This document shows positions 13,150-50,220 of a DNA stretch of 64,000 nt, piece after piece. The translations under genes and the position numbers were made by a program. Source of the DNA: Selaginella moellendorffii (Eukaryota; Plantae; Lycopodiophyta). Where the stretch lies: contig NW_003314354.1 in the NCBI RefSeq assembly GCF_000143415.4, positions 224,575 through 288,574 of the forward strand, read 5' to 3'. Position 1 is the stretch's first letter. The number at the start of each line of letters is the position of its first letter. The notes below the pieces were generated by a model. That model saw nothing but the letters and a program-made list of their open reading frames with translations. It searched no databases and was not told where the DNA came from.

Positions 13150-13585
13150 GCTGTGTTGAACCCTAAGCGCTGCCAAACCACCGTTAAGGCAAAAAAGTAC
13201 TAAGAATGGGTTGATGGAGTATTTACCAATGGCCTGGTCGTAAATTTTCTTTACGATTGAGACGAAGGCTAACAAGTGAGAAGCCCTGTTCCTGTGCGAA
13301 GCTCCATCATTTAGCTTCGTCGCTTCTCCTAATTGCCTAAGATCCAAAAAGCCGAAAGACGCTCAGCCATGGAGCTGCACTTGGAGTCTCCGAGTCATCG
13401 AAAATGTCTTTGTGTGACAAGTCGCACCAAGCACCAAGCCAGACACAATGCCTGCATTCCCCAATCGTTAGAACAAAGATGGAAAGAAGTTTGAACCATT
13501 GTGGAAGCAAAGTTTTGCAGCAGCACCACCTCAAATAAATCTGATCCCAGAAAATGTCAAATCTCAGCCAACTTCGGAATAAGCG
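13150..13585 (-). pseudogene. Inverted, deletion-riddled copy of the CFAP119-like gene 5' half and its upstream region (parent about 27905-28575)
   Basis: The reverse complement shares gacttgtcacacaaaga, gatgactcggagac, cagctccatggctgagc, ttaggagaagcga, gcacaggaacagggcttctc and gccattggtaaat with the parent. Confidence 0.85.
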
Positions 13586-13586
13586 A

Positions 13587-13770
13587 CCAGCTCCACCAGA
13601 CCAAGACCATTCTAGAATCGATCGATGAAGAAAAGCTCTCGAGGTTGCGGGAAAATGGGGCTAGAGCAGCGAAGCATATGGAGTGGCTCTCGCCTCCACA
13701 GCCGGAGGACATGGTCTTGTACCAGTATGGTGGCAGCGCCACGTCACTCGCTACGTGGATTGAATCTAGC
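13587..13770 (+). pseudogene. Inverted copy of the exostosin 3' end (parent 24430-24628)
   Basis: DQLHQTKTILESIDEEKLSRLRENGARAAKHMEWLSPPQPED is nearly identical to the parent, with internal deletions. Confidence 0.9.
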
Positions 13771-13812
13771 GTTAGGAGGGCTGAGCTGGCACTTCGGCCG
13801 AAGTGGTTTGCC

Positions 13813-15474
13813 ATGGCGGAGGCGAGGAGGGTGACGAGCCGGGATTCCTGTAGAGCAAGTTCTGTTCCAAAGTTTGGAGGATGGAAGTTCCCGCAGCGCG
13901 CCATAGATCCTTGGTCCAAGCCTGGGATCGAAATGCAACTGGAGAGTGTGGATGGGATTGGATTGCTTTCTCCGCGATTTGTTCCGTATCGCCCAGTTGG
14001 TATACTTAAGCCGAGGTTGATATCGACTTCTTTTGTTTTCGTCTTTGTTTTCCAGGTGTCCCGGATTTAGTACGAGATAGATCGCTGCTGCCAAAGTGTT
14101 ATAGATTCTACAAAGGAGGCTACCAGGAAACGAAGAAACCGACGTTGTTTGACGTTGTTGAGGACGAAGGGAATCATGTGGTTCTCCCGCTGAGAATCAA
14201 AGGATGCCAATGGAATGGGGAACGATGGTGTGCTACCAGCTTTTCCGCTAGTGAAGCCCGCGGCTCAAATGGTTCCAACATTCTCCAGAGCGAGCTTTCC
14301 AAGTCCGAGCAGCGGCTGAAGCGAAGCCGGTGATTGTTTTCGATTTTTGTGCTGCCGTTTTGAAGTGTTTTCCAACAGGAACCACACAGAGTGGGAGATT
14401 ATTTCTTGCGTGAGACTTGGACTCCTCCCAAGCACGAGAAGACGAAAAAGAAAACGCCAGTTCCCCCTTTGGCTGTGAGTCTGATTCCAATGTTTAACGA
14501 GTCTGAAGAAGAAGCAAAGAACTCTGCCTTGATCAACGAGTACCGGATGGAAGCCAGGCGCGTGGCATATGAAAAGTACGTGTTTTCAACTTCACTGAAC
14601 TTTGTGGTTGATGTTTCCCTGTTTGGAATGCATCTAGATCCAAAGGTGAAGACGCTCAACCCAAGCCAGGTGTGGAGCCGACCGTCACGGGCATGCCACC
14701 CAAAGCTCTTGAGGACTACAGCCTCCAGCAGCTGGGCTCCATACTTGGGAAAGAGATGAAGTTCTCAGCTTTGCAACACAAATTCAACAAGCAGCTGTAC
14801 GAGTTTTGCGACTCGTCCGACACATTACGTCCATTTACATTCCGCCGGAAGTACGCTGCTCTCAAGGTAAAGTTTTTCTCGCAGATTCTTTTCTTTCTCA
14901 GCTGGTATCTCCTTCTCCGGACAGGCTCTCCATGACAAAGAGGCTGCAAAGGACATCAATCCGGCCGCCAGCATGGACCAAGCCGAAGTGTTCCTCAAAG
15001 GAATGGATCAGCATCCGTGGTACAAGGAGCTTGCAAAGCTCATATTTTCGGGTGATAAATGTGGCTCCAGGGGAGAGTGGCTCATCCTTAACATCCTCCG
15101 CCTGGCCGTGGAGGTACGCTTGCAAAGTTCTAGATAGATGCGCAACGCTATTCATCCGTTCTTGGTTCCAGGGAGGAGGCAGATTCTCCAGAAAGGACTT
15201 CGTCCCATTGCTCTACTTCCTGGACAACGAGGGAGTGAATCTCAGCGAGCCAGGCACAGTGAAAGCTCTCGGATTGATCAGGATGGCACTCAAAGTTCCC
15301 AACGAAGCTTTGGAAGAATTCGTGGAGTCTTGCGATGTCGTCCCGGAGTGGCTTCTCAGCCTCTATCATCCCAGGTATGGAAGGCTCATCTCGTTTCGCA
15401 GGCCTACGCCGCTCCAGCTCAAAGCCTCGCGCTACTTCAGTCGCTTTAGAAGCATGCAGTTCTCCTTCGTGTAA
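13813..15474 (+). CDS. Uncharacterised multi-exon gene ('gene X'); most complete of three local copies, may carry a frameshift near 14330
   Basis: GT-AG-bounded exons read MAEARRVTSRD..., ESEEEAKNSALINEYRMEARRVAYE, HKFNKQLYEFCD, MDQHPWYKELAKL and DFVPLLYFLDNEG...FSFV*. I recognised no family and could not join exons 2 and 3 in frame. Confidence 0.5.
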
Positions 15475-15961
15475 ACCAGTTGCCGACGTGGCACATTTCA
15501 AATTAGAACCACCCGCGTCAGCAAAGCCCTAGCCACGTGGTGCCCAAATGACGTGGACAAGATGTGGCGCCATGCATGCGTTACGGACTGCCGCGTCAGG
15601 AATAGGGTTTATGCAGCTGGGAAGGGAAACATCGATCAGATCCGGCAGCGCTAGCGTCGATCTCGTCGAATCCATGGCAAATTCTAGCGGCGGCAGCCGT
15701 GGCGCCTGCATTTCTGGAATGTAAGTGGATTTTGGGGGGATTTGTTGCTCCTTCTTTCTTTACCAGCACCATAGTCTTCTCTTAGACGAATAATCTCTGT
15801 CACACACACACGAACAGATCTGCGCAGATGATTGCGTCGCACTAGATGTTGTTGATCCCCTGATCGTCGTCGTTTCCACTCGAGTCCCATGAGATGATCC
15901 TCCTCCCTGGTGTGCCGCTGTGATAATCTCAAGAGCGAGTGCCCTCTCCTCCAAGCATCGG

Positions 15962-17456
15962 ATGGCCCCAAACCCATCAGCATTGCTACTGGCTCCCGTC
16001 CCAAACTCCTCCTCTTCTAGGAAGCGCCACGCAGAGGACGGTGGTAGTGGAATTTCCATTGGAGCCGGCCCTGCGACCAAACGGGCTGTCAAAACGCCTG
16101 ATGTTTTGTTTCGCCTCCTTGTCCCTGCAGGGAAGATCGGCAAGGTGATCGGCAAGAAAGGATCGCAGATAAAGAAGCTGAGAGACGAGACTGGCGCTCA
16201 CATCAAAATCGCGGATCCCATGAACGTATGTAAAGTTCTCTCTTTTCGTTACTTCCTTGGGTTGTTTAAGATCTTGGCTAACGTGTTTGATGCATTTGAT
16301 TCCAGACTACCGAGGATCGAGCGGTACTGATATCTTCCAAAAACGAGGGTGTCTCGGACAGAAGTTGTGCCGAGCTTGCTCTCCTTGAAGTCGTCACGAT
16401 CTTACTAAAGGTGACATTTTTTTGATCGCGAATATGTCACTCGTCGCTCTGAACATTTCTCATTTTCTAGGACGGAGATGGTGCGACGCCTTCTGCGGCA
16501 ATTGGTCCTCAGCACCAAGGCTCTCCCAATTTGACCAGGCTGCTCATCGCCGGCTCCCAAGCCGGGAGCTTGATCGGCAAAGCCGGGGCCAACATAAAAA
16601 ACATTCGAGGCTCATCCTCGGCCAGCGTCCGAGTTTTGCCTTCGGACCAGCTCCCGCTTTGCTCGGCAGCTTGTGAGACAGATCGGCTAGTCCAGGTATC
16701 TCTTATTTCTCTTTCCTTTTTGTTCCTCGTCTCAGCTTAGAAGCGCTTCCAGATCTCGGGCGAAGTGGCCGCGGTACAAATGGCCATCGAGCTCGTAGCT
16801 GCCAACTTAAGGTAGTATTTTTTGGGGGTGGGGTGGTGTTGCTTTGCGGCAGACGATAATTTTACTGCTGCGCTCGCAGAGATAATCCACCAAAGGAAAC
16901 TGTGCCTACAAATCCAGAAGCCAAGACGGCATACTTTCTAGGAATCGATGGAAACACCGGACAGCAAGTACTACTCCCGCATTCTTCCGTGGCTGCTGTC
17001 TACGGGCATTCTCCTTCCTCCATGGCTCTCTACGGCCTCCAACCGCATCCTCTCGCAGGTCCAGCATACGCTGGCGGGGTTTTGGCCCAAGCTCCGCCGC
17101 TCTACGCAAATCCTGCCGCTCGACTACCACCGATGCTACCAAAAGTCTCGGCGGAGATGAGCGTTCCCAGCTCGGTCATGGGAGGCCTCATTGGAAAAGG
17201 CGGCTTTCATATCTCCCACATGAGGAGTGTTTCCGGTGCTACCATCAAGGTACGTTTTTTTTCGTTTTTAGCTCCGCTCGATCGATCGGGAAGATCTAAG
17301 TTTTTGTTTCTCGGTTTTGTGAAGGTCAATGGAAGCAAAGAAAGCTCCGTGGAAAGAACCATATTGTTTGAAGGGACTCAAGAGCAAGTAAATGCCGCGC
17401 AAAGTTTGGTTCATGCGTTTCTTAACGGGCAATCGGCCCTTCCTTCGTCGACGTGA
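15962..17456 (+). CDS. Three-KH-domain RNA-binding protein (PCBP/FLK/PEPPER-like)
   Basis: Three KH GxxG loops: KIGKVIGKKGSQIKKLR, AGSLIGKAGANIKNIR and MGGLIGKGGFHISHMRSVSGATIKV. GT-AG introns. Confidence 0.88.
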
Positions 17457-18365
17457 CGATGGATTAGATTAAGGTAAAACAAACTAGGCAATAAAACAAA
17501 TTAGATTTAAAGGGAGGGGTTTTATGTTCTAGTTCTAGCTAGCTTTCTAGCCTGCAAAGGTTTTAGCAAGAAATCAAGCGATCGAGCGAGCCATCATGGC
17601 AGAGGATGTGCTTGCGGGCATCTCATCTACTCCTTTGACGATTTCTGGGAGGCGCTGCCGTCGCTCCTCCAGAGATTTCGGTGGAGAAACTGCGTCCATC
17701 AAGCTCCTGAATGCGTCGCTCCGGCCGCCCGTGGTGAAATATCCCTGCAGAGCTATTCGGCAAGATTGTTCGCGGGCATCCATGTCAGGGTAAGAAAGAG
17801 GGCTTTGATGATATACATTTCGTTGCCTGTGAAGCTAGAGAGGAAAGAGGAGTGTGTTTCATTCTTCTTTTGCTTGACTGAGGTTTCTTTCTTTTCTTCT
17901 CAGCTCTCTAACGAGAAGGTCGACGAGTCCTTCCGAAATGACGGAGTTTTTGTCGGAGAGATTCCGTGTATGATCGGCTCCAAGCTCTCAAACGCCCATG
18001 CCGATGGAAAAATCGATTGTCCTCTTGATCCTGGAGCCTATGTCATCGTCGAGGGAGCTGAGAAGGTTTGGGCTTTCCACCTCTTGGTTTGCTGGAATGA
18101 CTTTCTACAACTTTCCAGGTTGTGATGCCTCAAGACTTGAACTTTGGGCGAGATGCTCCAATCTCTCGGAAGGGCTGCTGGAAGAGCTACGTTGTTTATC
18201 CCAACGAAGGCTTGTCTTTCCGGAACACTTTCACGAGAGTTCTTCTCAAGGAGGACAAAGGAATCATCAACCTGGAGTTGTCTATCATGGGAGCCGATCC
18301 AGTCTGGATCGTCGTAACGCTTCGTGCTCTGGGATTGGCGACGAACAAGAGTGTCCTGGACGTGC
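17455..18365 (+). pseudogene. Inverted, truncated copy of the NRPD2 upstream region and exons 1-3 (parent about 10325-11319)
   Basis: Near-identical sequence including introns (e.g. GEIPCMIGSKLSNAHADGKIDCPLDPG). Exon 1 carries several deletions and frameshifts, and the copy breaks off after SVLDV. Confidence 0.92.
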
Positions 18366-19345: not shown

Positions 19346-19394
19346 TTGTGTTGTTGATCAGATATGCTTATAATTTCGAATTGTGTCTTCGCTT

Positions 19395-20929
19395 TGCTTC
19401 CTGGACAACGAGGGAGTGAATCTCAGCGAGCCCGGCACAGTGAAAGCTCTTGGATTGATCAGGATGGCACTCAAAGTTCCCGACGAAGCTCTGGAAGAAT
19501 TCGTAGAGTCTTGCGATATCGTCCCGGAGTGGTTTCTCAGCCTCTATCATCCCAGGTAAGGTTCATCTCGTTTTGCAGGCCAACCAGCTCAAAGCCTCGC
19601 GCTACTTCAGTCGCTTTCGAAGCATGCAGTTCTCCTTGTGTGAACAAATTACCGACGTGGCACATTGCATCCTCCAATTAGAACCGCCCAGCCCTCATTC
19701 CTTTTATTAGAGCGAGACACGTAAGCGTGTGCCCTGTATATAGAGTATCATCCTTTTGGTACCTCCACGGCCAGACGGAGGATGTTAAGGATGAGCCACT
19801 CTCCCCTGGAGCCACACTTATCACCCGAAAAGATGAGCTTTGCAAGCTCCTTGTACCACGGATGCTGATCCATTCCTTTGAGGAACACTTCGGCTTGGTC
19901 CATGCTGGCGGCCGGATTGATATCCTTTGCAGCCTCTTTGTCATGGAGAGCCTGTCCAGAGAAGGAGATACCAGCTGAGAAAGAAAAGAATCTGTGAGGA
20001 AAATTTTACCTTGAGAGCAGCGTACTTCCGGCGGAATGTAAATGGACGTAATGTGTCGGACGAGTCGCAAAACTCGTACAGCTGCTTGTTGAATTTGTGT
20101 TGCAAAGCTGAGAACTTCATCTCTTTCCCAAGTATGGAGCCCAGCTGCTGGAGGCTGTAGTCCTCAAGAGCTTTGGGTGGCATGCCCGTGACGGTCGGCT
20201 CCACACCTGGCTTGGGTTGGGCGTCTTCACCTTTGGATCTAGATGCATTCCAAACAGGGAAACATCAACCACAAAGTTCAGTGAAGTTGAAAACACGTAC
20301 TTTTCACATACCACGCGCCTGGCTTCTATCCGGTACTCGTTGATCAAGGCAGAGTTCTTTGCTTCTTCTTCAGACTCGTTAAACATTGGAATCAGACTCA
20401 CAGCCAAAGGGGGAACTGGCGTTTTCTTTTTCGTCTTCTCGTGCTTGGGAGGAGTTAGCGGAAAAGCTGGTAGCACACCATCGTTCCCCATTCCATTGGC
20501 ATCCTTTGATTCTCAGCGGGAGAACCACATGATTCCCTTCGTCCTCAACAACGTCAAACAACGTCGGTTTCTTCGTTTCCTGGTAGCCTCCTTTGTAGAC
20601 TCTATAACACTTTGGCAGCAGCGATCTATCTCGTACTAAATCCGGGACACCTGGAAAACAAAGACGAAAACGAAAGAAGTCGATATCAACCTCGGCTTAA
20701 GTATACCAACTGGGCGATACGGAACAAATCGCGGAGAAAGCAATCCAATCCCATCCACACTCTCCAGTTGCATTTCGATCCCAGGCTTGGACCAAGGATC
20801 TATGGTGTGCTGTGGCAACTTCCATCATCCAAACTTTGGAACAGACCTTGCTCTACAGGAATCCCGGCTCGTCACCCTCCTCGCCTCCGCCATGGCAAAC
20901 CACTTCGGCCGAAGTGCCGCCTCAGCCCT
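19395..20929. pseudogene. Second copy of gene X: 5' part on minus (19758-20929), 3' end flipped onto plus (19395-19680)
   Basis: Near-identical ORF translations (e.g. 14672..14935+ versus 19941..20204-). 19395-19680 matches 15215-15505 in direct orientation. Confidence 0.9.
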
Positions 20930-21642
20930 TCTGTGGTTTAGGGTACGTGGTTTACGTGGTACCCTAAACCACGTACCACATATGGTTTAGTGTGTTGTGT
21001 CGCAACGCAGTCTCCACTAAAGACCCACCAGGAAACCACCGTTCAGAGCCTGAACACGACATTGCTTCTATAGCTGGAATGGAGAGAAGTATAAAAGCCT
21101 ACCTCTTCTTCGGCCGATACAGCTCCTCGGGTACACAGCTCACCGCCTAGAAACGATCAGGGAGAAAGTTATAGCCAGCGAGAAGCGAACGGAATGTAAC
21201 TTACACGTCAAGCTGTGATCGTAGTAGACCGGGAGGTCGTAGCGGCCGAGCCAGAGACGCGCGTGAGCGCTGGCATTGACAATCGTGTAGTAGTGCGGGA
21301 GTGTTGAGTGTGGCGGCCGGTGCAGCAGCAGCGAGCGTAGGAGCTGGTTGGACCGGATCCCGCGCAGCAGCAGCCTGGCCTCGCTCACACGTAATGGAGA
21401 AGTGGTAACTTCGTCGCATGGGTACGCTGGTGGCACTTCGGGCAAGGCGTTCCTGTGTGAGTACTCCTCCTCCACTATGTCTCCTAGCCGTCTGTAAGTG
21501 GCAACAGCAGCCCAGTTCCATCCCAGGTTCGTCACTGGCAAATAGAAAAAGTAGTCACTCTCCGTCAGCTTGGAGAGAACATCATCCAGTCCAACGGCTA
21601 GACTCGCTCCTGATCCCTTCCCTGTTACTAAGTAACAACAAA

Positions 21643-21859
21643 ATGCGTTAGCACTGCACTCGGGTCAAAACTTACGTACGGCCACCATGCAGCTCCTGCC
21701 ATCCTGGAATGGGTTAGCACAGCACTCGGCTCAAAACTTACGTACCGCCACCATGCCCCTCCTTCCTGCCATTCTGGAATGCGTAAGCACAGGCACTCTG
21801 GGTCAAAATTTACGTACCGCCACCACGCCGCGAGCTGCATCCTTTCTGCCGCTCTGGAA
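21643..21859 (-). repeat. Three tandem units of about 66-80 bp, each a mini-exon plus short intron
   Basis: Plus-strand unit: t(t/a)agcac...gcactc..g.tcaaaa.ttacgtac.gccacca...tgcc..ctggaa. On minus each unit has a GTACGT donor and a GCTAAC/GCTTAC branch-like site, and each exon is preceded by TTCCAG. Confidence 0.8.
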
Positions 21860-23575: not shown

Positions 23576-23614
23576 CAACGTCGTGGTCGAGGTGAGAACA
23601 AACATAGTGAGCTG

Positions 23615-24435
23615 TGTACTTCCGGCGGAATGTAAATGGAGTCGCAAAACTCGTACAGCTGCTTGTTGAATTTGTGTTGCAAAGCCGAGAGCTTCATCTC
23701 TTTCCCAAGTATGGAGCCCAGGCTGCAGTCCTGGCATGCCCGTGACAGTCGACTCCACACCTGGCCTGGGTTGAGCGTCTTCACCTTTGGATCTAGATAC
23801 ATTCCAAACAGGGAAACATCAACCACAAAGCTCTGAATCAGTGAAATTGAAAACACGTACTTTTCATATGCCACGCGCCTGGCTTCCATCCGGTACTCGT
23901 TGATCAAGGCAGTGTTCTTTGCTTCTTCTTCAGACTCGTTAAACTTTGGAATCAGACTCACAGGCAGACGGGGGACTGGCGGTTTCCAAGTCTCACGCAA
24001 GAAATAATCTCCCACTCTGCGTTGTTCCTGTTGGAAAACACTTTAAAAGGCAGCACAAAAATCGTTGGAGCCGTGACTAGCGGAGAAGCTGGTAGCACAC
24101 CATCGTTCCCCATTCCATTGACATAGCGAGAGAATCACAAGGTCAACTCTATAAATCTCGTACTAAATCCGGGAAACCTGGAAACCAAAGAAGAAAAAGA
24201 AAGAAAATGATCACAACCTCGACTGAAAGAAAGTTCACGCTTACCAACAGGCAAATCGCACGCTCTCCAGTTGCATTTCGATCCCAGGCTTGGACCAAGG
24301 ATCTATGGCGCACTACGGCAACTTCCATCCTCCAAACTTTGGAACAGACCTCGCTCTACAGGAATCCCGGCTCGTCACCCTCCTAGCCTCCACTACTTCG
24401 GCCGAAGTGCCACCTCAGCCCTCCTAACGCTAGAT
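23615..24435 (-). pseudogene. Third, most deleted copy of gene X, directly downstream of the exostosin gene
   Basis: GDYFLRETW...ESEEEAKNTALINEYRMEARRVAYEK...HKFNKQLYEFCDS with multiple deletions. Confidence 0.88.
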
Positions 24436-25548
24436 TCAATCCACATAGCGACTGACGTGGCGCCGGCGCCATAGCTGGTACAAGACCATGTAGAACGCGT
24501 CCTCCGGCTGTGGCGGCGAGTGCCACTCCATATGCTTCGCTGCTCTAGCCCCATTTTCCTGCAACCTCGAGAGCTTTTCTTCATCGATCGATTCTAGAAT
24601 GGCCTTGGTCTGGTGGAGCTGGTCGCGGCTGAGGACGATCGCGAAGCTATTCCAGTCCAGAATGTCCTGGAACGGCAGATCGGACAGCTTCCCCGCGGAG
24701 AAGATGACCGGAATGCATCCCGATCGGACGGCCGGGATGACGAGGTGCCGATCGCTGGAGCCAAGGCTGAGACAAAACCTTGTTGTCACTAGCAGCTGTA
24801 GATCCATTTTCACTGCGCCAGCGACGAAGCTCTCGTCGGATTTCCAAGACGCTGGAACATCACTCGCCGCGTAGCCCTGGGAGCTGGAATCGTACACCGC
24901 GAGATTCCACCGACGGCGCTGGGGAGGATCGATCGATCCTCCTGCGGGCGGCATTGTGATGTCCTTGTGCGCGAGGAATTCCTGCGCTCCATGCCTGGCC
25001 AGTGGAAAGCAGGCGATCTGGATCGCGTTCTTCTTGAGCTCAAGAACATTCCTGGACCAGTCGCTCGTAATATCGTGGCACGAGACGAAGAAGTGATCCG
25101 CCCCGAGCGATCGCTGCCAATACGGGTAGAGATCTCGCAGCTGCTGGATGTAAGACTTGAGGGAGTGAGCGATCCCTTTCGGATCGGGCCTCTTCTTCCA
25201 GATCGCCGAGATCGACGCTGGCAGGAGAAACAAGTCCGCCGCCTCCGGATCATCCGTCACAAACCCTGAGGCCAGCAGCGAATCCACAAAGACTCGATCT
25301 ATCGAACCTGGCCGTGCTGCCTTCCCATCTCGCAAATCTGGAGCGCTGGCGTTCTGGATCATCGGGTAGACGTAGACCTTGAAGCGATCTAGAAACTCCT
25401 GGTAGTCCCGTGCAAGAAACGCTGGAGAATGGTAGAGACTGCGATCAAGATCGCTAGCTCCCTCGAAATCCAGCAAGAACGCGAGAGAAATCGAAGCATC
25501 GATGAGGAAAAAGAGAAAGAACAAGGATGATCCGCCATTGCCAGCCAT
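24436..25548 (-). CDS. Exostosin-family glycosyltransferase (GT47), intronless
   Basis: N-terminal hydrophobic anchor, FKVYVY, DPEAADLFLLP, YPYWQRSLGADHFFVSCHD, RFCL, GCIPV, LPFQDILDWNSFA and DAFYMVLYQLWRRR. Confidence 0.92.
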   Translation of the reverse strand: MAGNGGSSLFFLFFLIDASISLAFLLDFEGASDLDRSLYHSPAFLARDYQEFLDRFKVYVYPMIQNASAPDLRDGKAARPGSIDRVFVDSLLASGFVTDDPEAADLFLLPASISAIWKKRPDPKGIAHSLKSYIQQLRDLYPYWQRSLGADHFFVSCHDITSDWSRNVLELKKNAIQIACFPLARHGAQEFLAHKDITMPPAGGSIDPPQRRRWNLAVYDSSSQGYAASDVPASWKSDESFVAGAVKMDLQLLVTTRFCLSLGSSDRHLVIPAVRSGCIPVIFSAGKLSDLPFQDILDWNSFAIVLSRDQLHQTKAILESIDEEKLSRLQENGARAAKHMEWHSPPQPEDAFYMVLYQLWRRRHVSRYVD

Positions 25549-27823: not shown

Positions 27824-28021
27824 AAGGGATTTTGCTAATACTTTTCTTGTGAAACTAACGACCTTTGACTGGAGTTCGCGGGGAAAAAAAGTATGAAACA
27901 AAGAAGCTATGATTCGGCCGAAGTTGGGATGAGCGGCTGAGATTTCTCTTCACTAACTGACATTTCTGGAATCAGATTTAGGTTTCTCCGGTTTCAGGTG
28001 GTGCAAAACTTTGCTTCCACG

Positions 28022-29214: not shown

Positions 29215-29253
29215 TACTTAAAAGTTCATCTTTGGCGTGTGTACCTCATCAGC

Positions 29254-31075: not shown

Positions 31076-31479
31076 AAACCCTATTGAAATCCATTGGTCA
31101 TAAGGGGCTAAAGTATGGAGACAAAATAAATCATCCGCGGGAATTTCAAAGTATCAGGGATATTCCGGCAATCTGTGAGTAGCATATTCCGGCGGGGTTC
31201 TAGATCGATCTTGGCATTTGTATAGAACATTTACATCATGAAGAAGATGTCCTTGTAACACTTAGCAACTTTGCCAAGTGCTTTTATCCTCTGTTGCCAC
31301 TGGCTTCCTTTTGTACTTGTTCCCTGGGATCAGACACCGGAAGAAGATGAACAATGTGGAAAAATTATTGCCATTTTGAAGTCAAAAGAAAATGCAATAG
31401 TAACCATTCTGTCAGTCCACCTAATAAACCTTAGGTCTAGCAATATTAGATGACACTCCTAAACCCTAAAGAAACCAAG

Positions 31480-33990: not shown

Positions 33991-34387
33991 AAGACGCATG
34001 CAGAGATATAGAGATGGATTGGCATTTGTAATGTAAATGTTCTCATAACACTCATTAACTTTGCCAAGTGCTTTCATCCTCTACCGCTGGCTCCCTCTTG
34101 CGCTTGTTCCCCTCGCCACCCTTGGGATCAGGAGTGGTGGTGCTCTCTTGACGATCCCGGACAGGTCCTCTGCAACCGCGCCTAGGGCTGGACATGATCA
34201 AGGAAGCTCAAGGAGAATATGCTGCCCGTAGCCTGTGTGCGTCCAAGATTTAAAGAGTTTTTGTCCGTTTTTTTTTACATTTGTAATTAAAATAAACTCC
34301 TTTTTCTCCATCTTTTTCTTGAAGCTGGGTGCCTTTTTCTGCAAAACAAATCCTTTAGGTTTTCCTAACCATTCATTTTTTCGAGCG

Positions 34388-38500: not shown

Positions 38501-39880
38501 GCTTAAGAAGGCTTTATATCAGTCTCCATGGCAGTGGTATGATAAGATGAACAGCTATCTACTCTCCACCGGTTTTGTGAGTATTTCAGCAGATTCTAAC
38601 GTTTATCTTCGCAAGTCAGGTATGACATATATTTATCTTGCACTCTATGTAGACGATTGTCTACTAGTCGGTTCAACTCGCATAGCTTTGCAGCAGCTCA
38701 AGCGTGAGCTACAGGCACGATTTAAGATGGTGGATCTTGGATCAGTGAAATATTGTTTCGGGATCGAGATTATACGCGACAGGCAGGCAGAAGTATGTTG
38801 ACGATATCTTGGAGAGGTTTCATCTTGCTGACCTGAATGAAGCGTCAACTCCTATGGAAGCCGGCCTCCATCTCAGCAAAGATCAAGTCCCACAAACAGT
38901 CGAGGAATGCGAGAAGATGAAGCAGATACCGTACCGCAGATGGTTGGCAGCTTAGTCTACCTGATGGGCTGCATGCGGCCAGCCAGGTTTGGCTTTTTCA
39001 GCGGGAGCAGTGTCCCCAGTTTCTCGAGACTCCAGGATTTCCTCATTGGTTGGCAGTCAAACGCATCTTTCGCTACTTGAAGGGGACCAGACATTATCGC
39101 ACTCACCAAGAATCCCAGGTACCATGGGTGTACCAAACATATCCAGGTGCAGTTCCATTATATTCGAGATCAAGTGAACCAGCGTGTTTTGGAGCTCATC
39201 CATTGTGGAACAACAGAACAGGTTGCAGATATTTTTACCAAGGCGTTACCTCTAGCTTTGTTCCAGCGACACGTACAAGCACTTGGCGTGAGAGAGCTCC
39301 TTGAGCGAGCACCTTGGAGTGATACGAATATGCTGGCATAGCATATTCTCCAGAGCTCTCTAGAGGCGCGGTAGGCAGTTAGGGGAGTGTTTTCCTTTGT
39401 AGCCTCTTGTGATGAATGAGACCCCTGTTCATCCTAATGCCCGATATGCTAACTGTGATTGATTCAGAATACAAACCATGCCAAGACTAAAATCAAGCCA
39501 TATAAGCTATGAAAAACATTACCATTGTAACAACTTCTCTATTGCTGAGTTCCTCGGCGTGTAACGCTCCTCTTCTAAGCCCTCTTTTAGTAAGCCCAGA
39601 CTTTGAAACACGCTGGGTGAAGTGTCTAACGAAACGATATCAGTAAAAGAATCACTCAGAATGCAGCCATACCACCCAAATCAAAATCAAGGCACTGGAA
39701 ACTGAAAAACCATGCACATACCTGGCTGTTTGAGGAGCGGCTGCAGCGTCTTAGCAGCAAAGAGAGGCACTTTGACGCCAATCACTTCCTCGTATGTGAG
39801 CTGCTCCAACTCTCCGACATATTCGTAGCCCTGTGCTTCCAGAATTTGCACAGACGTATCAATCACGCCCATTTCCATTC
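35570..39880 (-). pseudogene. SAM-like header plus P-loop NTPase gene relic (Crinkler/CR-NTPase-like), interrupted by the copia element
   Basis: 5' exons VQILEAQGYEYVGELEQLTYEEV and ERYTPRNSAIEKLLQ (39520-39880). 3' exons VVYFINL...RLLIVDEAQAAF..LLW (Walker B-like) and HELLLRGQL...YFLPSRVH (35570-36358). No Walker A found; stops present. Confidence 0.45.
36359..39440 (+). mobile_element. Degenerate Ty1/copia LTR retrotransposon (about 3.1 kb) with very short LTRs
   Basis: LTR-like direct repeats at 36359-36453 and 39320-~39437. PBS tggtatcggagc (tRNA-iMet type) at 36454. WHRRLGH/CxxC pre-integrase, LELVHSD integrase, QLDVTTAFLHGDL and LYVDD RT, and ADIFTKAL RNase H, in copia order with many frameshifts. 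Confidence 0.92.
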
Positions 39881-40489: not shown

Positions 40490-41635
40490 ATGTCATCGAT
40501 CGTGAGTGGAAACCAACGAACACGAAAAGATCTCAAAGCCCCGGCAGCGGGAAGAACAAAAGGTGGTTGAATCGAAACTCCACTGCTCGAGCTCGAAGAA
40601 CCGTGTCCGCCGGCTGCTGCTCCCTCTTGCGCTTGTGCCCCTCCACCCTTTCTCAAGCGCCAGAGCTCCTTCCACGCCAGTAACAAGTCACACCCAACAC
40701 GCTCCATCTGCAAGTTTTCTTCCTCCTCCCAAAATTTAGTTTTTACTTCCGTTGAGAGTTAGATTTGAACACACGCCTTGTGGACTAGACATCTCAACTT
40801 AGCAGATAATTAGGAAATCCATTGGAGCACCACTGGCTCTTGGATTCTCTATCTGAATAACTGACAGTAGAGAACTACAAATCCAGGAGCATATGTTATA
40901 ACTTGTACTTTATTCTCTTGGAATACGTACTAGTATCCTGACAAGTCAGCTGTGAATGATACTACATTAGCTAGTTACTGATACTAGGCTGTTGTGGTTC
41001 CTAAGTTTTTCATGCTTGCAAGTTTGTTCTCGTCACTTATGTGAGCTTTAACCATCTGGCAACACCCTTGAACACGTTGCAACGGATTGCATATAGTATC
41101 AAAATGTTCGCAAAGTTTGATTGGATCCAAGACGGTATGAAGAGCCTCGTCCTAACTCGAGCAAGACGTAGAGAAAGAAAACGGTACAGTTTGATCGCCT
41201 GGCTTGGGCATACGCCGCAATGCGCTCGCCCTGGCACTCGAGCGCTATGGAGCCGTCAATGTAGAGACCCGTCTGGTCCAAGACACTGCTCGCAACCTCT
41301 CGGCACAGGCCAGCGCCATCCACGCTCCACACCTTGTACGTGATGCCGTTATCGTTGAAGACAGCAATTACGCACGCCATGTAGCGCTCTCCACAGAGGA
41401 AGATGCGTACCAGAAGATCATACCCAACAATCGCTCTAGTTCATCCGCGGGAAAAGGTGAAAAACGTATTTACAAGCCTTTTTCTTGTGATCACTCTATC
41501 GTCTGCGTCGACTCGTAGATCTCGCAGCTCTGGTGCACCCATGCACTGATCACCCGGAGTCTCCCACGGTCCCAGCATCAATTCGGCAGCGCTTGATTCG
41601 GCCACCAGGTAAAAACTTGCCGTGCGTTTCCCATT
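40490..41635 (-). pseudogene. Two condensed relics of the adjacent F-box + GH43 locus (40490-40681; 41205-41635)
   Basis: Blocks shared with 42050-42135, 42330-42510, 43140-43275 and 43416-43700, e.g. atcgatcgtgagtggaa, agccccggcagcgg, aagatgcgtacca and gagtctcccacgg. Confidence 0.85.
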
Positions 41636-41970: not shown

Positions 41971-43179
41971 TTACATCATGAAGAAGATGTCCTCAAACAC
42001 TTCAGCCTCCACGCTGCCGAGTGCTTTCGCCCTGCATTGCCGGATCCTGCGAACCGTGTCTAGCGGCTGCTGCTCCTCCTTGCGCTTGTGCCCCTCGCCA
42101 CCCTCGGGATCAAGCGCCACAGCTCCTTCCACGCCAGAGGGCTTGACAAGCGAGGGGCGGTAAACCACCGCCCGCCGGTACTGCACACCCTCGCCGCTCT
42201 TGGCACGGACGTACATCCACTCGTCGCGATCCAAGTCGTAGACCACGGGTGGCAAAGGCTCGCCACCTTCGTCAGCCCACTTCTCACCGTAACGATCGCG
42301 GCACTGGCCGGCCAGGCACACGAGATTGCCCTCAGCCTGGCACTCGAGCGCCATGGAGCAGTCAATGTCGAGACCCGTCTCGTCCAAATCACTGCTCCCA
42401 ACCCCAAGCCACTGACCAGCGCCATCCATGGAGTCGAAGTAGAGGTCCAAGACATCGTTCGCAACCCCTCGCCACTGGCCTGTCCACACCCACACCTTGT
42501 ACGTGATATTGGTATCAGCGATTGCGCACGCCCGGTAGCGCACTCCCTTGTGCTCCCACACGAAAGGGAGACACCCCAGCGTATCTGTCCTAGCGTTGAG
42601 TTCGCCTGTGTCGGCGATGTCAGGCAAGCTCAGGATCGGGCCCCAGGCCCGCGAGCTTGATTCGTAGACACGCCTGTTATGGGTGTCTAGCAGCTTGAAC
42701 TCCCCACTCGCCGGGTCGGCAGTCATGCTGTAGATTCGACCGGCTTGCTGCTGATCCAGGCGTGGGATCCTGACCCACTCGTTGGTTGCCGGATTGCCCA
42801 CCGTGAACTCCACCCCGGGCGTCTCGCGGTCGGGCCAAGACGGCTGGCGGATGAGCACCAGGCCTGCCGAGGAGGCGACGATGTCGAAGAAGGATCCGGG
42901 CGGGAGCGGGAGCTTCATCCACGCCGGGAGCGGAGAGACGACGCGTGACTTGGGGCTCCAGGCGCAGACGTGGAGTGGTCGAGGGTGATGCTGCCAGTGG
43001 GAGGTGTAAGCCGTGAGGAGGACACAGTCTTCGTCGCTCGAACGCGGCCGCCACAGCGCCCTAAACTCGGCGGATTTGATGATGGCTCTCCACTCCTTGC
43101 AGACGCGGCGGGCTTGCAGCAGTGATTCCCAGCCGATCGAGAGAAAGATGCGTACCAATAGATCATACCCAAGTGCCAT
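41971..43179 (-). CDS. Intronless F-box protein (beta-propeller/FBA-like C-terminus)
   Basis: LGYDLLVRIFLSIGWESLLQARRVCKEWRAII (F-box), VASSAGLVL, VGNPATNEWVRIP and VVYDLDRDEW. Confidence 0.88.
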   Translation of the reverse strand: MALGYDLLVRIFLSIGWESLLQARRVCKEWRAIIKSAEFRALWRPRSSDEDCVLLTAYTSHWQHHPRPLHVCAWSPKSRVVSPLPAWMKLPLPPGSFFDIVASSAGLVLIRQPSWPDRETPGVEFTVGNPATNEWVRIPRLDQQQAGRIYSMTADPASGEFKLLDTHNRRVYESSSRAWGPILSLPDIADTGELNARTDTLGCLPFVWEHKGVRYRACAIADTNITYKVWVWTGQWRGVANDVLDLYFDSMDGAGQWLGVGSSDLDETGLDIDCSMALECQAEGNLVCLAGQCRDRYGEKWADEGGEPLPPVVYDLDRDEWMYVRAKSGEGVQYRRAVVYRPSLVKPSGVEGAVALDPEGGEGHKRKEEQQPLDTVRRIRQCRAKALGSVEAEVFEDIFFMM

Positions 43180-43269
43180 TTGCAAAGCAAGCGCTTCCCG
43201 CGAACAAGAAATTCGAACAAAGCCGTGAAAAACCCTAATTTCTATCGATTAAAATATAACAAAAAGTAT

Positions 43270-45181
43270 TTACAAGGAAATTTCACCTTCGTCGTCGTCA
43301 AGGCTCGCGTTCTTCCAATGTTCCGGGAGCTTCCATTTCCTGTGCCACCGCACAGACACACGAGACCACATTGGGAACTCGAAGCTATCGTCTTCCGGGG
43401 GGCCGTCGAGACGCCCATCGATCGTGAGTGGAAGCCACACGTATCTCGAGTCACTCAGATTCCCCGGGTTCCAGCGATCGGCGACGAACACGAATAGATC
43501 TCGCAGCCCCGGCAGCGGAAGAACAAACGCGACCTGGGAGAAGAAGGTGGTGAGCCGAAACTCGTCCGAGGCACCCACGCACGGATCGCCCAGAGTCTCC
43601 CACGGCCCCAGCATCGATTCGGCCGCGTGGAGCAGCGCTTGATTCGGCCACCACCCCGTGCACCCCGACGTGATCATGTAGAAGAAGTTGCCGTGCTTGA
43701 AGACGGCCGGAGCTTCCCTGTGCTGGTTGACGAGCGCGCGCGAGACTGCTGGAGAGAGGCCCAGGTAGTCGGGAGTGAGCTGGGAGATGTGGAGCTCGCT
43801 GTTGGATTGCGACGAGTAGACGAGGAAGGCGGAGCCATCGTCCTCGTCCTTGAAGATGGTCATGTCCCTGCTATCGAAGCCGTGTGGTTTCGTGCTGCCC
43901 AGGTACGTGAAGGGGCCGAGGGGAGACGAGCTCGTCGCGATCCCGACGCTGGCCTTGGAATAGTTTGCGTTGTCGATGTGCAAGTACATGACGAACTGCC
44001 GGGTGTGATCGTTGAAGATGACTTTGGGACGCTCGGCGACGTTGCTGGTGTGGAGATCGCTGCTGGTGTTGGTGGTGTCGGCTTTGAGAACCAGGCCCTC
44101 GTTCTTCCAGCGCCACAGGTCTTGCGAGGAGTAGCAGCTGATGCCTATCAGATCCACCTGTGGACAGTTTAAAATTACAGTGGTGAGAGAAAGCGAAAGA
44201 AAAATACAACTACTGGAGTTCTAGACGACAAAAGCGAATAGCGAAACACTATTGATCGATCGTGAAGGATCGATTTTGTCAAGAACGACACAGTCCGCGA
44301 GAATCTTTTGTAAAGCTTGCAAGAGTACGTCACGTTGAAATGAACAATACAAAGTCATGAAAAGCACATGTCCCAGAGATCTATTTCACGGAAACTATGA
44401 AAGCAAGACGATCATAACAAGCACCAAAAAATAGAGAAAAGAACGACCAGCCCGAGAGATGCAAACAACGAAAGACGATCATGACAGGCACCAAGGAAAA
44501 AAAAAACACAATAGAGAAAAGAACGAACAAACGATCAATGCCTGAGAGAAATCGTGATGCAAACAACGCGAGGGAGAAAGAAAGTGAACGCGAAGCAAAG
44601 TAAACGAAACTTACCCGAGCGCTGGATTTTTTGTGGAGGCGATAAGTCGGTCCTTGCTTGTTCTCTCCATACCAATAGAATGTCCTCGTCTCGGGAATGT
44701 AGAGAATCCCACCCCCGTGTGCTTGTATCGGCAATCCATCCACATCCCTCCACTCTCTCCCTGGAAAGAAAATATCCCTTTCCTCCTCGCTGCTGCTGCT
44801 CGGATCCACGGCGGCCAGATTTCGATCCGGGAAGTAGAACAGGCGCCTGTCCGGCGACAGCTCGCTCAAAGGATCGTCGGAAATGGCCGATTTGGCGGAT
44901 TTGGAAGATTTCTTGTGCTTCTTGCCACTGCTGCTCCTGACCGAGAACACCGGAATTTCCTCAATCTCTTCCAGCTCCGAGTAGCGGAGGAGATCGCTCA
45001 GCCTGGCGACCGGATTATCCCTATCCTTACGGCGATTGCTCCGCGCAGTGGCGGCAGAGGGCGAGGAGATCCAACCTGTGAAGAAGTGGAGCGCGACGAG
45101 CCAGGCGACGAGGATCCAGACGAGTGTGGGCAGCGCCAGGGATGTGAATGCCATCGCGCCGCCACGAGCGCGAGCATTCAT
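43270..45181 (-). CDS. Glycoside hydrolase family 43 (plant GH43A/B-like beta-1,3-galactosidase), two exons
   Basis: N-terminal TM anchor, PIQAHGGGIL, FYWYGENK, ERPKVIFN, SRDMTIF, REAPAVFK, ITSGCTGWWPN, TFFSQ and SRYVWLP. Confidence 0.93.
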
Positions 45182-46723: not shown

Positions 46724-47400
46724 ATGGCGCCTCCGACAGCCAAAGGTAATCGCCGCATTCTCTCTCGATTTCGTCCATACCGAATCGCCGCTGTGTTCTA
46801 GGCAAGGATGCCAAATCCAAGGCCGCCAAGGCAGCGAAGGCGGTGAAGAATCCGGCCCCCAAGATCCGGCGGAGGAGGGTCCGGACCTCGGTGACGTTCC
46901 ACAGGCCCAAGACCCTGAAGCAGGCGAGAGCGCCCAAGTATCCCCGCCTCAGCGCCCCAAATCGCGAGAAGCTGGATCACTACAAGGTGCTCAAGTACCC
47001 GCTCACCACCGAGTCGGCCATGAAGAAGATCGAGGATAACAACACCCTGGTCTTCATCGTCGACATCCGGGCCGACAAGAAGAAGATCAAGAACGCCGTG
47101 AAGATGATGTACGATATCCAGACCAAGAAGGTGAACACGCTGATCAGGTAATCTTTCTTTCTTTCTTTCCTCGGTGGTAGTCTAGTGTGTCTTTTCGATT
47201 CACTTCTTCGTGTGTGGGCTTACCATTTCTTGGTTCGTTTGTCTGATTGATTTTTGGCTTTCCAGCTTCTCATTGTTTTCATTCATGGGCTTACCACTTT
47301 CGTTTTTTTTTCCAGACCTGATGGGCTGAAGAAGGCGTACGTGAGGCTTACAGCAGACATCGACGCTTTGGATGTGGCGAACAAGATTGGCATCATCTAA
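46724..47400 (+). CDS. RPL23A: 60S ribosomal protein L23a (uL23)
   Basis: [36 protein letters not shown] and KVNTLIR|[11 protein letters not shown]...DVANKIGII*. Confidence 0.97.
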
Positions 47401-48034
47401 GCTAAGCTTTCCCGAGTCTGGTTTTTATGTACTGCTCGCGCTGCTCGTTAATGCAAAGTTTTGATTTTGATCTTACATACCGTGTCTGTTGTGCCTTGAA
47501 GCCAGCGCTGTCATGCCTATGGACTACTTCTGTTTTCTTGAGCCACTTCAACACTTAGTGAACGTCCGAATGTTGCCGAGGCGTTGAGGATCCCAATCTA
47601 CGGCTGTGTTGCTGGTTCTTAAAGACCACCCAAGGCAATTCATTCGATGTTCTCAAGCACGAATTCACGAAAAGCTTCAGTTTTCTTTCTAGCCTGTAAG
47701 AGAGAGGCTCTAAACGCTTGCGCAAACTTTCCTCCATGCCGGATGCACTGGTCTTTCTGATCCAGCAAAAGATTGATCACCTTTCAAACAGAAAACAAGC
47801 CATAATAGTGCGTCTCCCTGGAGTCGTTTGTCATGGCGAAATATTCAAACAAGATACCGGGGATGGGCATATGCAAACGCAAGCTCGCTCCAAAGTTTGT
47901 CTTTCTTGTAGATTTTTCGTTCTCATCGGTCATAATATCAAGATCACCTCTGCATGCACAGGATCTTCTCTGAAGCTATACCATACTTTCCGATCAAAAT
48001 CGCCCTCGAGATCAAATCATCTGGTCTGATCCTG

Positions 48035-48730
48035 ACAGCCTTGTCGTGGTATGCTTCTTTTCTTTCTATTCCTATGTTCCTGTTGTGACTGCCTATGTCG
48101 TGGTTTAGACGCAGCTCAAAACCTCAGCAAGTAAGCAAAAGAGCTTCGCGATGAGTTTAAGTCACCTGGTTCTCTTCTGGAGATTTTGGCAAGAAGTTTA
48201 AAAAGCTCGAGTCTGGTTTTTTAAATTTTTTTTAATTGACAATCTTGGAGCCCTCTTGGAGCGCGAGAGAGAAGCGCAGACACGCTTTGAAGTTGCAAGC
48301 GCTTGGGCTCCGGGACGCCCTGACCAGGACCAACGGAGAGTTTCGAGAAACCTCTCGGTTTGCAGCAAGCGCACCAGCAAAAGCAGGGAGAAAGAACTCT
48401 CGAGCGGCTCCAGTTGCTGCAGTGCGAAGCAGAGCAGAATGGATGGGCCTGTTCAATCTCAGAGGTAGAAAAATGCAGAGAACCGATAGAGAGACTTGTT
48501 ATTTGATCCTCGAGCTCTGTTACAGTCGGCGGCTCTGGCACGGTCTGGAAGTGGCTGTCAAATGCATCCGATCAGTAGAACAAAAAACAGTCTTTCAAAT
48601 GAAGAAGTCCACTTACGAATGCTTGTTCTGCGGCAGGAAAGAGGTTGAGCTCCTTCCCTTTCAGGTTAGGACATATATCACCTCAGCCGTATGATGGACC
48701 GATAGCTCATTCTGTGGCCTACGAAGATCC
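48035..48730 (+). pseudogene. Condensed copy of the Raf-like kinase gene (parent 50226-51750)
   Basis: Collinear blocks covering the promoter, first exons, LERERE and WHGLEVAVKCI, and gagccgtatgatgga-like sequence. About 1.5 kb of parent is represented in about 0.7 kb. Confidence 0.88.
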
Positions 48731-49129
48731 GCTAGCCGGAAGAGGCTTGCTGTCAATGCGCCTCCTACAAACACTGATCCGGAAACTGAGAGATCAAACG
48801 CTTTGTCGAGGCTGGCCTCTTAAAAGTATGTTACATTCTTCCATTTAGCAGTAAACTTTCTTCCAGCTTCTCTATGCCGGGTCTTCCAAGATGTTGCCAG
48901 TACTATTAATCCAAACAAACTCGCCAAGCTCTATCTCTTTTTCTTTTTCCAATGTGGCGGATTGGAGCGCGCCAGGTTATCTAAGGAGCGAGCTCGAACG
49001 GTGATTAAACCAGCAAGATCTTTCACGCAGACTGGTCACCTTTCTTAAACTTTTGAAACACTAAAACTCCACTTTCGCAGGAATAGTGAGGATACATCTC
49101 CGACTGAATGGTTGGGATATAGAGTAAGA

Positions 49130-49670
49130 TCCCAGTTATTCATCACAAATCCGCATTGAGTTTTTTCTTCTGGATTTTTGTGTTTGCCCTGGAGTCGTTT
49201 GTCATGGCATCTACCATCTCGAGCAAGATACCGGGGACGGGCATATGTAAACACCACCGCGTTCCACGAGAGGCTATCTTGCTTTGGGATCTTCCTAGGA
49301 TGGATCTTGATGTATTGAGTTTTCCACGCATTTCATAGCAATGCGTGGAAATTCTTAGGACACAATGCTGCCCCCTGCCATCTCCAGAAACAGTTGCTGC
49401 ATCGGTTTAGATTCCCTCTCAGGGCATCTTGCTGATCCAGCGCTGCAGCGCATGGAGACCATCTGCCGAGTCCTCTCTCATTCTGCCGAATGAGCAGCGG
49501 ATTGAAATAGACGACGGGAACGGTCGCCATTCCGATGCTACTTTTGCTCACACACTCAAACATTAGTCTCGCACGAATTCTAGAATATGTGGTCAAGTAG
49601 AGCATGCTCGCATCTGCTTTGGCATCGATGACTGAGAGTACTCTCTGGGCAATATAAGCTGCCCTCACTC
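49130..49670 (-). pseudogene. Highly decayed PPR fragments; part also duplicated at about 47815-47880
   Basis: IPKQDSLSWNAVVFTYAR and QLFLEM-like fragments. cctggagtcgtttgtcatggc...caagataccgggga.gggcatatg occurs at both 47817 and 49188. Confidence 0.4.
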
Positions 49671-49964
49671 GTTTCCTTTTTCATTCTGGGTTTTGTTGCA
49701 CTTCGGATGTCTGCTTACTATTTTGTTTGTGTTTTGTGGAGATGGTGCCTTTGATCAACACTACCTCTACCGTCATTTTAAACAATACAATGAGGTAATA
49801 TTGAACAAAGCCACCATCTCTGCAGAAGACAAACAAAATAGCGGGCTCAATCCAAAAGGTTCATTCCAGTGTGATACTTCTCGCAGCACAAGATGGGCAT
49901 CGCGGCCTTTGGTCTTTCTTGGTTCTTTGTTCTGTCAGAAAGAAGTTTTTTTCTTTCTCGTTTG

Positions 49965-50220
49965 TTTTGCTTTCCAGCTTCTCATTCCACTAGTTTTGGC
50001 TTACCATTTTCCTTGGTTGCTCTTTTGTTTTGATCTCTCTTTGCTTGGATAATGTTTTTTCTTCGTTTTCCAGACCTGATGGGCTGAAGAAGAGGCTTAC
50101 GGAAGACGAACAAGTTAAGCTAAGCTAAGCTTTCGTGGTTTTATGTACTGCGCTCGCTGCTCGTTAATGCAAAGCTTTGAAAATTTTGATCTTAGTATGC
50201 CGCGGCTATCGTGCCTTCCA
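49965..50220 (+). pseudogene. Condensed copy of the RPL23A last intron, last exon and 3' UTR
   Basis: tttccagacctgatgggctgaagaag, gaggcttac, taagctaagcttt and ggttttatgtactgc...gctgctcgttaatgcaaag are shared with 47260-47500. Confidence 0.85.

Follow-up and report, generated by a model that had tools for sequence, protein, structure and literature searches.

Partial local copies of neighboring genes and their erosion by deletions in a 64-kb window of the Selaginella moellendorffii genome

The window that we analyzed, 64,000 nt of Selaginella moellendorffii DNA (GCF_000143415.4, NW_003314354.1:224,575-288,574, forward strand), holds about ten local partial copies of neighboring genes, direct or inverted, which most likely reflect ordinary local duplication followed by deletion-biased pseudogene decay, with no dedicated condensing mechanism. 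They were sought by BLASTN self-comparison and a repeat search, with positions 13,150-50,220 as the focus, and the parents were named from Pfam profile matches, for which exons were taken singly. The copied items are the 5′ end of NRPD2, CFAP119/CLAMP, the tail of an exostosin gene, a segment that we call X (three copies), an F-box gene, a GH43 gene, a Raf-like kinase gene and RPL23A. The collinear self-matches have E values from 1e-11 to 0, and divergence between copy and parent is 2-14% (3-14% for all pairs except one). The copies are also 8-54% shorter than their parents (0.46-0.92 of the parent length), the exception being a small segment, Y, that is 2% shorter (0.98). In a TBLASTX self-comparison aimed at older relics, everything added to the BLASTN pairs was noise. 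The window displays, event by event, how partial gene copies produced by local duplication are disposed of in a very compact plant genome.

A first-pass annotation of this DNA had described these spacers as miniatures of nearby genes that are not retrocopies, and that description is borne out: the self-matches are collinear and the copies keep introns and upstream DNA, which makes them non-processed duplicates. Processed pseudogenes (retrocopies) were considered and rejected because introns are present and the copies adjoin their parents. Coding capacity is broken in relics of coding genes: NRPD2 exon 1 is frameshifted, RPL23A is truncated and the kinase copy lacks most of the kinase domain. 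Known non-processed pseudogenes share these traits: they are DNA-level copies adjacent to their parent gene, with introns and upstream sequence preserved and reading frames disrupted, and in tandem units the loss is reciprocal. What sets the present copies apart is their very high density, with about ten fragments packed into 37 kb of a compact genome, and that most were partial from the outset, since the duplicated blocks cut through genes.

The NRPD2/RPB2-like parent was recognized from its RNA_pol_Rpb2 domains (numbers 1, 2, 4, 5, 6 and 7, matched in Pfam by ORFs spanning 7487-11161) and from alignment. Its duplicated 5′ region (10325-11336, minus strand) comprises ~175 nt of upstream DNA, exon 1 (ATG at 11161, donor at ~10900), intron 1, exon 2, intron 2 and part of exon 3. 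The inverted partial copy (17439-18364, plus strand; BLASTN and alignment) retains both introns and the ~175 nt upstream of the ATG. Within exon 1, coding deletions of 28, 10, 10 and 19 nt (67 nt in total) shift the frame, and the deleted region matches RNA_pol_Rpb2_1 in the parent; upstream there are further deletions of 16, 12 and 4 nt. From intron 1 to exon 3 identity is 97-98% with 1-nt indels only, and the copy is accordingly a mosaic in which all larger deletions sit in the more diverged 5′ part. The well-preserved part bears on the idea that the miniatures are functional, for example as inverted repeats giving putative small RNAs against the parent, here a Pol IV/V subunit gene. The inverted orientation of this copy, its distance of ~6 kb from the parent and the 97-98% identity across 570 nt, in which a 110-nt intron is entirely unchanged, would suit such a role. 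However, high identity that extends into introns is better explained by recent gene conversion or re-copying than by selection, the frame of exon 1 is lost, X has no codon-position bias and every other relic decays in proportion to its age; we consider function very improbable.

The 5′ part of a CFAP119/CLAMP-like gene (27938-28480, plus strand; from alignment, with CLAMP, PF14769, matched by the downstream ORF at 28628-29059) recurs as an inverted relic at 13196-13577 (minus strand) of 0.70 of the parent length. The alignment of this relic spans exon-intron borders and contains deletions of 9, 9, 9, 8, 9, 11, 13, 19 and 100 nt, together with a single 7-nt tandem duplication. The nearby exostosin (GT47) parent is a single-exon gene of 370 aa (24436-25548, minus strand; Pfam), whose ORF is identical to a catalogued protein with a 98% allele on another contig. 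Its relic (13583-13770, plus strand; BLASTN and repeat search) had been called a collinear miniature. The match is real, but it is confined to the final ~190 nt of the gene and is fused to the CFAP119 relic: a 5-nt filler (13578-13582) joins the two, the parental interval has lost 3.3 kb, and a 9-nt string is common to both parental sides of the junction. Together, the exostosin tail and X at 23609-24626 match 13583-14861 in inverted orientation.

Segment X occurs as copy A, the longest (13774-15117, plus strand), copy B, inverted and 98% identical to A (19759-20932, minus strand), and copy C, downstream of the exostosin gene (23609-24430, minus strand); A and C were delimited with BLASTN. B differs from A by one 170-nt deletion, private to B and polarized in part by C. 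Between A and C the divergence is ~6% (K 0.062) and the length ratio 0.80; of the gaps, whose polarity is uncertain, 14 fall in C and 4 in A. The proposal that X, too, is the miniature of a gene stands insofar as there are three related copies, but no coding capacity was recognized: seven ORFs had no Pfam match, one large protein search returned no homologues and there is no third-position bias. Because X carries no coding signal, there is no basis for calling any one copy the parent. Segment Y, found by both repeat search and BLASTN, lies at 15210-15514 and again, adjoining X copy B, at 19391-19689 (both plus strand; direct orientation, K ~0.065). A palindrome is located exactly at the edge of the inverted copy B.

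The A/B pair is also where false local copies, made by haplotypes or mis-joined reads in the assembly, would be suspected: the reference assembly contains two haplotypes, and the identity of A and B equals that of the exostosin allele on the other contig. Yet all pairs but one are 3-14% diverged with many indels, far above allelic difference, the copies have distinct flanks, and the region contains no Ns (the sole N run is at 55112-55502). We give an assembly artifact hardly any credence.

Farther along, adjacent F-box (ORF 41974-43248) and GH43 (ORF 43273-44220) parents, identified with Pfam at 41971-44220 (minus strand), are accompanied by a heavily eroded tandem relic at 40516-41607 (minus strand; BLASTN), with K ~0.14 and a length ratio of 0.63. 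Here 42051-43653 matches 40598-41607, and an additional GH43 piece lies at 40516-40560. Two further copies of the F-box 3′ end (34037-34130 and 31231-31324, both minus strand; BLASTN) have a 26-nt gap in common, besides which the latter has private gaps. The 5′ half of the Raf-like kinase gene (50226-51748, plus strand; Pfam PK_Tyr_Ser-Thr on 50931-51269) has a relic at 48035-48729 (plus strand; BLASTN and alignment) reduced to 0.46 of the parent length by deletions that include 20, 426 and 196 nt, the 426 nt being kinase-domain sequence in the parent. Directly upstream of the intact kinase sits a relic of the last exon of RPL23A (50066-50217, plus strand; BLASTN against 47308-47497). The RPL23A gene itself (46750-47497, plus strand; Pfam) has a last exon that ends in KIGII and then a stop; the relic begins in the intron preceding that exon, and a 9-nt deletion has taken away its AYV codons; part of the C-terminus is missing as well.

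Such intergenic gene fragments with intron pieces are also what Pack-MULEs and Helitrons yield, and a copia-type element is present in the window, so that capture and movement of the fragments by Pack-MULE-like or Helitron-like elements had to be weighed. In contrast to such captures, a search for terminal inverted repeats around four relic blocks found none, and the fragments are local and collinear: they adjoin their parents and keep the order and spacing of several genes (RPL23A-kinase, F-box-GH43 and CFAP119-exostosin tail-X). Transposon capture is in our judgment extremely improbable.

The length differences lie overwhelmingly on one side. Well-anchored gaps number 29 in the shorter copy versus 5 in the longer (binomial p=4e-5), and 44 versus 9 under a looser filter. 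Several cut out codons that are conserved in the parent (in NRPD2, RPL23A and the kinase) and are for that reason deletions; overall, deletions outnumber insertions by ~5-6 to 1 in the unconstrained copies. The earlier impression that deletions are frequent relative to substitutions was also correct, with 0.2-0.7 gaps per substitution (about one indel per 2-5 substitutions) in all pairs save the youngest (0.04), and with 3-17 nt lost per substitution in all pairs but the small segment Y. The median deletion is 10 nt and the mode 9-10 nt; 12 of the 29 well-anchored deletions are 8-12 nt long, 1-nt deletions make up only ~15%, and the size spectrum is incompatible with a power law (P<=0.001). 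Gaps of 8-12 nt exceed those of 3-7 nt by 12 to 5 in the strict set and 15 to 8 in the loose one, an excess that, for this window alone, falls short of significance when a flat null is assumed (P=0.07-0.10). An aligner artifact was rejected as the origin of the 8-12 nt mode: in simulations at 8% divergence, recovery was 93-96% at each deletion size from 1 to 30 nt.

Deletion-biased loss of neutral DNA was reportedly described by Petrov and colleagues for dead-on-arrival elements of Drosophila, and deletion-biased DNA loss is known in small plant genomes such as that of Arabidopsis. Our relics agree with these cases in the ~5-6 to 1 excess of deletions, in its growth with divergence and in the loss of several nucleotides per substitution; they differ in a spectrum in which events of 1-3 nt do not predominate. 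A tentative and rather doubtful explanation of that difference is that S. moellendorffii has a distinctive, frequent deletion process that removes 8-12 nt (about one helical turn), rejoins the ends without microhomology and acts fast enough to erase duplicates and hold genome size down. It might stem from double cuts that are closely spaced or staggered, or from a particular route of end processing, and the size mode would then be the signature of a specific enzyme activity rather than of generic end joining. Should a microhomology-free mode at 8-12 nt hold genome-wide, it would open to concrete tests the repair pathway by which the rate of DNA loss, and genome size, are set in lycophytes. In the literature we found nothing specific on a deletion spectrum or deletion bias in Selaginella, and nothing directly usable on repair and genome size.

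The deletions accrued singly after duplication. Three observations lead to this conclusion: gap density rises with substitution divergence K (rho=0.86, p=0.0065, 8 pairs), the youngest pair (X copies A and B, K=0.02) differs by one deletion only, and sister copies have some gaps in common and others private. Against a simple clock the youngest pair has a Poisson P of 0.006, or 0.14 once a substitution cluster is removed; having fewer indels per substitution, it indicates that accumulation was not perfectly clock-like, and K of the old pairs is probably underestimated. This shortfall is one of the points in favor of a different history, in which each relic was written, already condensed, in one multi-template-switch event (MMBIR/FoSTeS-like or MMEJ-coupled) and its deletions date from the duplication itself. 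The complex architecture at 10-29 kb, with its nested inverted duplications, the 3.3-kb skip with filler and the shared 9-nt string, fits such an event, as do the palindrome beside X copy B and 3-4 nt of microhomology at two large kinase deletions. But gap density that follows divergence, the lone deletion in a 98%-identical copy, the mixture of common and private gaps and an overall level of microhomology at chance all speak against the creation of all breakpoints in a single event, and we regard it as quite improbable. The duplication step of the inverted copies may well be due to template switching, but the many small deletions are not explained by it.

Junction microhomology was scored by gap sliding, and the null was obtained by placing deletions of the same sizes at random 5000 times. 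Mean microhomology was 0.83 nt for 24 well-anchored deletions versus 0.72 under the null (P=0.32), and for 35 deletions under looser criteria it was 0.89 versus 0.72 (P=0.20). In the strict set the share with at least 2 nt was 0.21 versus 0.17 (P=0.38) and that with at least 3 nt was 0.04 versus 0.06, the looser set being alike; only the share with at least 1 nt was slightly high (0.60 versus 0.44, P=0.04 uncorrected). Two of the four microhomologies singled out in the first-pass annotation are exact (AAG at 50971/50991 and TGGA at 51518/51714), but the others (AGCT at 51001/51429 and AAGC at 28258/28358) shrink to 1 nt under strict scoring. The MMEJ reading advanced there fails, then, by the very outcome that it had named as refuting it, microhomology at chance. 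The relics do share with MMEJ/polymerase-theta scars deletions of ~5-50 nt, a few junctions with 3-4 nt of homology and the one 5-nt filler, which with the 7-nt tandem duplication in the CFAP119 relic makes up the only two candidates for templated junction inserts, a very small number; unlike in such scars, microhomology of at least 2 nt is no commoner than under random placement. Ku-type end joining accounts for the junctions at least as well, and polymerase-theta joining with 1-nt priming could still lie behind the junctions.

The broader proposal of one duplicate-then-delete process survives in part: the copies are DNA-level and were shortened mainly by deletions, but a single coupled mechanism, such as MMEJ or template switching, is not supported. 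In the history that we favor, local segmental duplications, tandem and inverted, each covered parts of one to three neighboring genes and left partial copies in the spacers (the RPL23A 3′ end with the kinase 5′ half; F-box with GH43; CFAP119 with the exostosin tail and X). The unconstrained fragments then decay through the background mutation of the genome, with its strong excess of deletions over insertions. These deletions arise singly over time, typically at 8-30 nt and occasionally at 100-430 nt, and the joining, with little or no microhomology, would be most simply understood as an end-joining scar after breaks. Tandem units decay reciprocally, leaving one intact gene per unit. That relic decay contributes to genome compactness is plausible, judging from this one window.

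In annotation, relics of this kind give rise to false exons and chimeric gene models. A 'PEBP-like' relic had also been listed, and we found neither a Pfam match for it nor a PEBP signature anywhere in the window; the item meant may be a 77-nt piece at 47816-47892 (plus strand), which is repeated with 80% identity at 49187-49266.

Comparing the window with itself by repeat search and BLASTN gave collinear matches between intergenic segments and nearby genes, with E-values from 1e-11 to 0. For the genes, Pfam searches of individual exons identified an NRPD2/RPB2-like gene (7487-11161, minus strand), a KH-domain ORF (16860-17453, plus strand), a single-exon exostosin GT47 gene (24439-25548, minus strand), a CFAP119/CLAMP-like gene (about 27.9-29.2 kb, plus strand), a pectin acetylesterase, a kinase (34232-35386), a copia-type element (36.4-39.4 kb), an F-box gene (41974-43248, minus strand), a GH43 gene (43273-44220, minus strand), RPL23A (46750-47400, plus strand) and a Raf-like kinase (from about 50.2 kb, plus strand); a second kinase ORF (52618-54606) was recognized from kinase-domain motifs in its translation. 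The window is nuclear DNA, and its exostosin ORF is identical to a catalogued 370-residue protein, of which a 98% allele, named S. moellendorffii, sits on another contig.

The copies lie in both orientations. Inverted matches join the NRPD2 5′ region to 17439-18364, the CFAP119 5′ region to 13196-13577, and the exostosin tail plus segment X (together 23609-24626; X has no recognized gene) to 13583-14861; the X copies A (13774-15117) and B (19759-20932) are inverted relative to one another and 98% identical. A small segment, Y (15210-15514), matches 19391-19689 in direct orientation, and F-box plus GH43 match 40516-41607 in tandem. The kinase pair (50226-51748 and 48035-48729) and the RPL23A last-exon pair (47308-47497 and 50066-50217) are one tandem duplication, whose first unit retains RPL23A and whose second retains the kinase. 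The shorter copy has 0.46-0.92 of the length of its parent, except for Y (0.98). As the first-pass annotation had proposed, these relics are DNA-level copies of neighboring genes; they are not retrocopies, because introns and upstream DNA are retained (in the NRPD2 copy, introns 1 and 2 and ~175 nt upstream of the ATG). The exostosin “miniature” of that annotation covers only the terminal ~190 nt of the gene, and neither Pfam nor signature scans of the window found the PEBP-like gene or relic it had listed. No coding signal was detected in X, and therefore its “parent” cannot be named. Apart, at most, from A/B, the pairs are 3-14% diverged and carry many indels in N-free sequence, which argues against an assembly artefact.

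The difference in length reflects gaps that fall predominantly in the shorter copy. We used global alignments with cheap gap extension and, in a strict set, kept gaps flanked on either side by 15 ungapped columns at no less than 80% identity. Of the 34 gaps retained, the shorter copy carries 29 and the longer one 5 (binomial p = 4e-5), and a looser filter gave 44 and 9; in X, gaps may be of either polarity. Several others can be called deletions with certainty, since what they take out is conserved coding sequence whose parent is still intact. NRPD2 exon 1, which matches RNA_pol_Rpb2_1, has four such gaps in its copy (28, 10, 10 and 19 nt); one in the RPL23A relic takes out the AYV codons of a conserved motif, and one in the kinase relic takes out 426 nt of the kinase domain. 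There is no sign that the relics have a maintained function: their frames are broken and codon-position bias is absent.

The first-pass annotation had attributed this condensation to microhomology-mediated end joining (MMEJ) or template switching, a cause that our analysis does not support. Microhomology proved no commoner than expected by chance placement; judged by the criterion that the annotation had set for itself, the MMEJ proposal fails. As a measure of microhomology we took how far each gap can be shifted along the parental sequence, and we compared it with a null in which deletions of equal size were placed at random in those sequences. The 24 well-anchored deletions that span 4 nt or more had a mean of 0.83 nt (null 0.72 ± 0.23, P = 0.32), and the shares with at least 2 and at least 3 nt equaled the null. 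A looser set of 35 deletions gave 0.89 versus 0.72 (P = 0.20), with only the share having at least 1 nt slightly high (0.60 versus 0.44, P = 0.04, uncorrected). Among the four microhomologies originally quoted, AAG and TGGA are exact; AGCT and AAGC hold only with an additional change and count as 1 nt.

Were all deletions made in a single template-switching event at duplication, relics would be condensed from birth; several observations together lead us to favor stepwise erosion after duplication. Gap density in well-aligned blocks rises with substitution divergence, K (Spearman 0.86, p = 0.0065, eight pairs), and copies A and B of X, the youngest pair (K = 0.02), differ over 1.2 kb by one 170-nt deletion alone. 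The copy of NRPD2 is mosaic: all seven larger deletions lie in its more diverged 5′ part, whereas a 570-nt tract spanning intron 1 to exon 3 (10325-10900 and 17790-18364) has 97-98% identity and no indels longer than 1 nt. Within that tract, the 110-nt intron 1 shows no change from the parent and exon 3 carries −1 and +1 indels that compensate each other 14 nt apart, which suggests recent gene conversion between inverted repeats ~7 kb apart, or re-copying, rather than selection. At the F-box 3′ end, present in four copies, two sister copies have a 26-nt gap in common and each has private gaps, so some deletions preceded re-duplication and others followed it. The ratio of gaps to substitutions is 0.04 for the youngest pair and 0.2-0.7 for the rest; accumulation was therefore not strictly clock-like, although part of the rise probably reflects old pairs in which K is underestimated and the alignment uncertain.

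The duplicates are real and the mechanism of their shortening is ordinary. In the classical picture, non-processed pseudogene fragments undergo deletion-biased neutral decay, as in Drosophila dead-on-arrival elements and small plant genomes, and the relics here fit that description. Unlike the classical picture, the deletion spectrum here is centered near 9-10 nt, without microhomology, a less usual and modestly interesting feature of which a literature search found no description for Selaginella. The median is 10 nt, 1-nt events make up only ~15%, and a tail extends over 71-426 nt; there are 12 (strict) or 15 (loose) gaps in the 8-12 nt range, against 5 or 8 of 3-7 nt. Simulated deletions of 1-30 nt at 8% divergence were recovered at 93-96% in each size class, so the shortage of 2-7 nt events is not an alignment artefact. 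The 8-12 nt excess is strong against power-law spectra (P ≤ 0.001) and, in this window alone, not significant against a flat spectrum (P = 0.07-0.10).

Fold-back or template switching may well have played a part in the duplication step itself, above all where inverted copies are nested (10-29 kb). At its outer edge, copy B homology ends at 20932, directly beside a near-perfect palindrome (20934-20973, 14-nt arms) with the plant telomere-like motif TTTAGGG/CCCTAAA, which could be a fold-back priming site for this inverted duplication. Where the CFAP119 relic meets the exostosin tail, 3.3 kb are skipped and the junction carries a 5-nt filler, AATAA (13578-13582); the same 9-nt string, CTCAGCCGC, occurs on both parental sides (near 27950 and 24640), a few bases from the breakpoints. 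The palindrome, and the filler with its 9-nt string, are single observations each. Capture of gene fragments by a transposon would be another route to such copies; against it, a search for terminal inverted repeats around the relic blocks found none, and two or three neighboring parental genes are represented in the relics in their original order and spacing.

Other features of the window were recorded alongside. The NRPD2 copy begins immediately after the KH-domain ORF, and from the sequence a chimeric transcript is conceivable. The copia-type element (36359-39438; gag-pre-integrase 36845-37456, RVT_2 38439-38798) has very short, LTR-like ends of ~94 and 119 nt that differ by a 25-nt gap and ~5% substitutions; with an interior of only ~2.9 kb, it looks eroded itself. 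Between the kinase and RPL23A relics lies a 124-nt hairpin (49718-49841; 50-nt arms, 84% complementary, 24-nt loop), which may represent a MITE-like or hairpin-RNA-like element. Low-complexity, very AT-rich sequence (~31600-33900; GC 0.23 in 32-34 kb) contains small palindromes as well as tandem repeats that are short and degenerate, and is bordered on either side by F-box 3′-end copies (31231-31324 and 34037-34130). Three tandem units of ~66-72 nt, 73-88% identical, occupy 21642-21859. A direct repeat of 160-175 nt (7216-7376 and 56154-56328, 83-91% identical, 49 kb apart), one copy of which lies just past the NRPD2 3′ end, may be a small dispersed repeat. The sole assembly gap is a run of 391 N (55112-55502). 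Downstream lie a full-length U2 spliceosomal snRNA gene (60350-60542, plus strand; Rfam RF00004, 162 bits) and a long ORF (61907-64000, minus strand, 698 codons) that runs off the window and contains protein-level repeats in a TBLASTX self-comparison.
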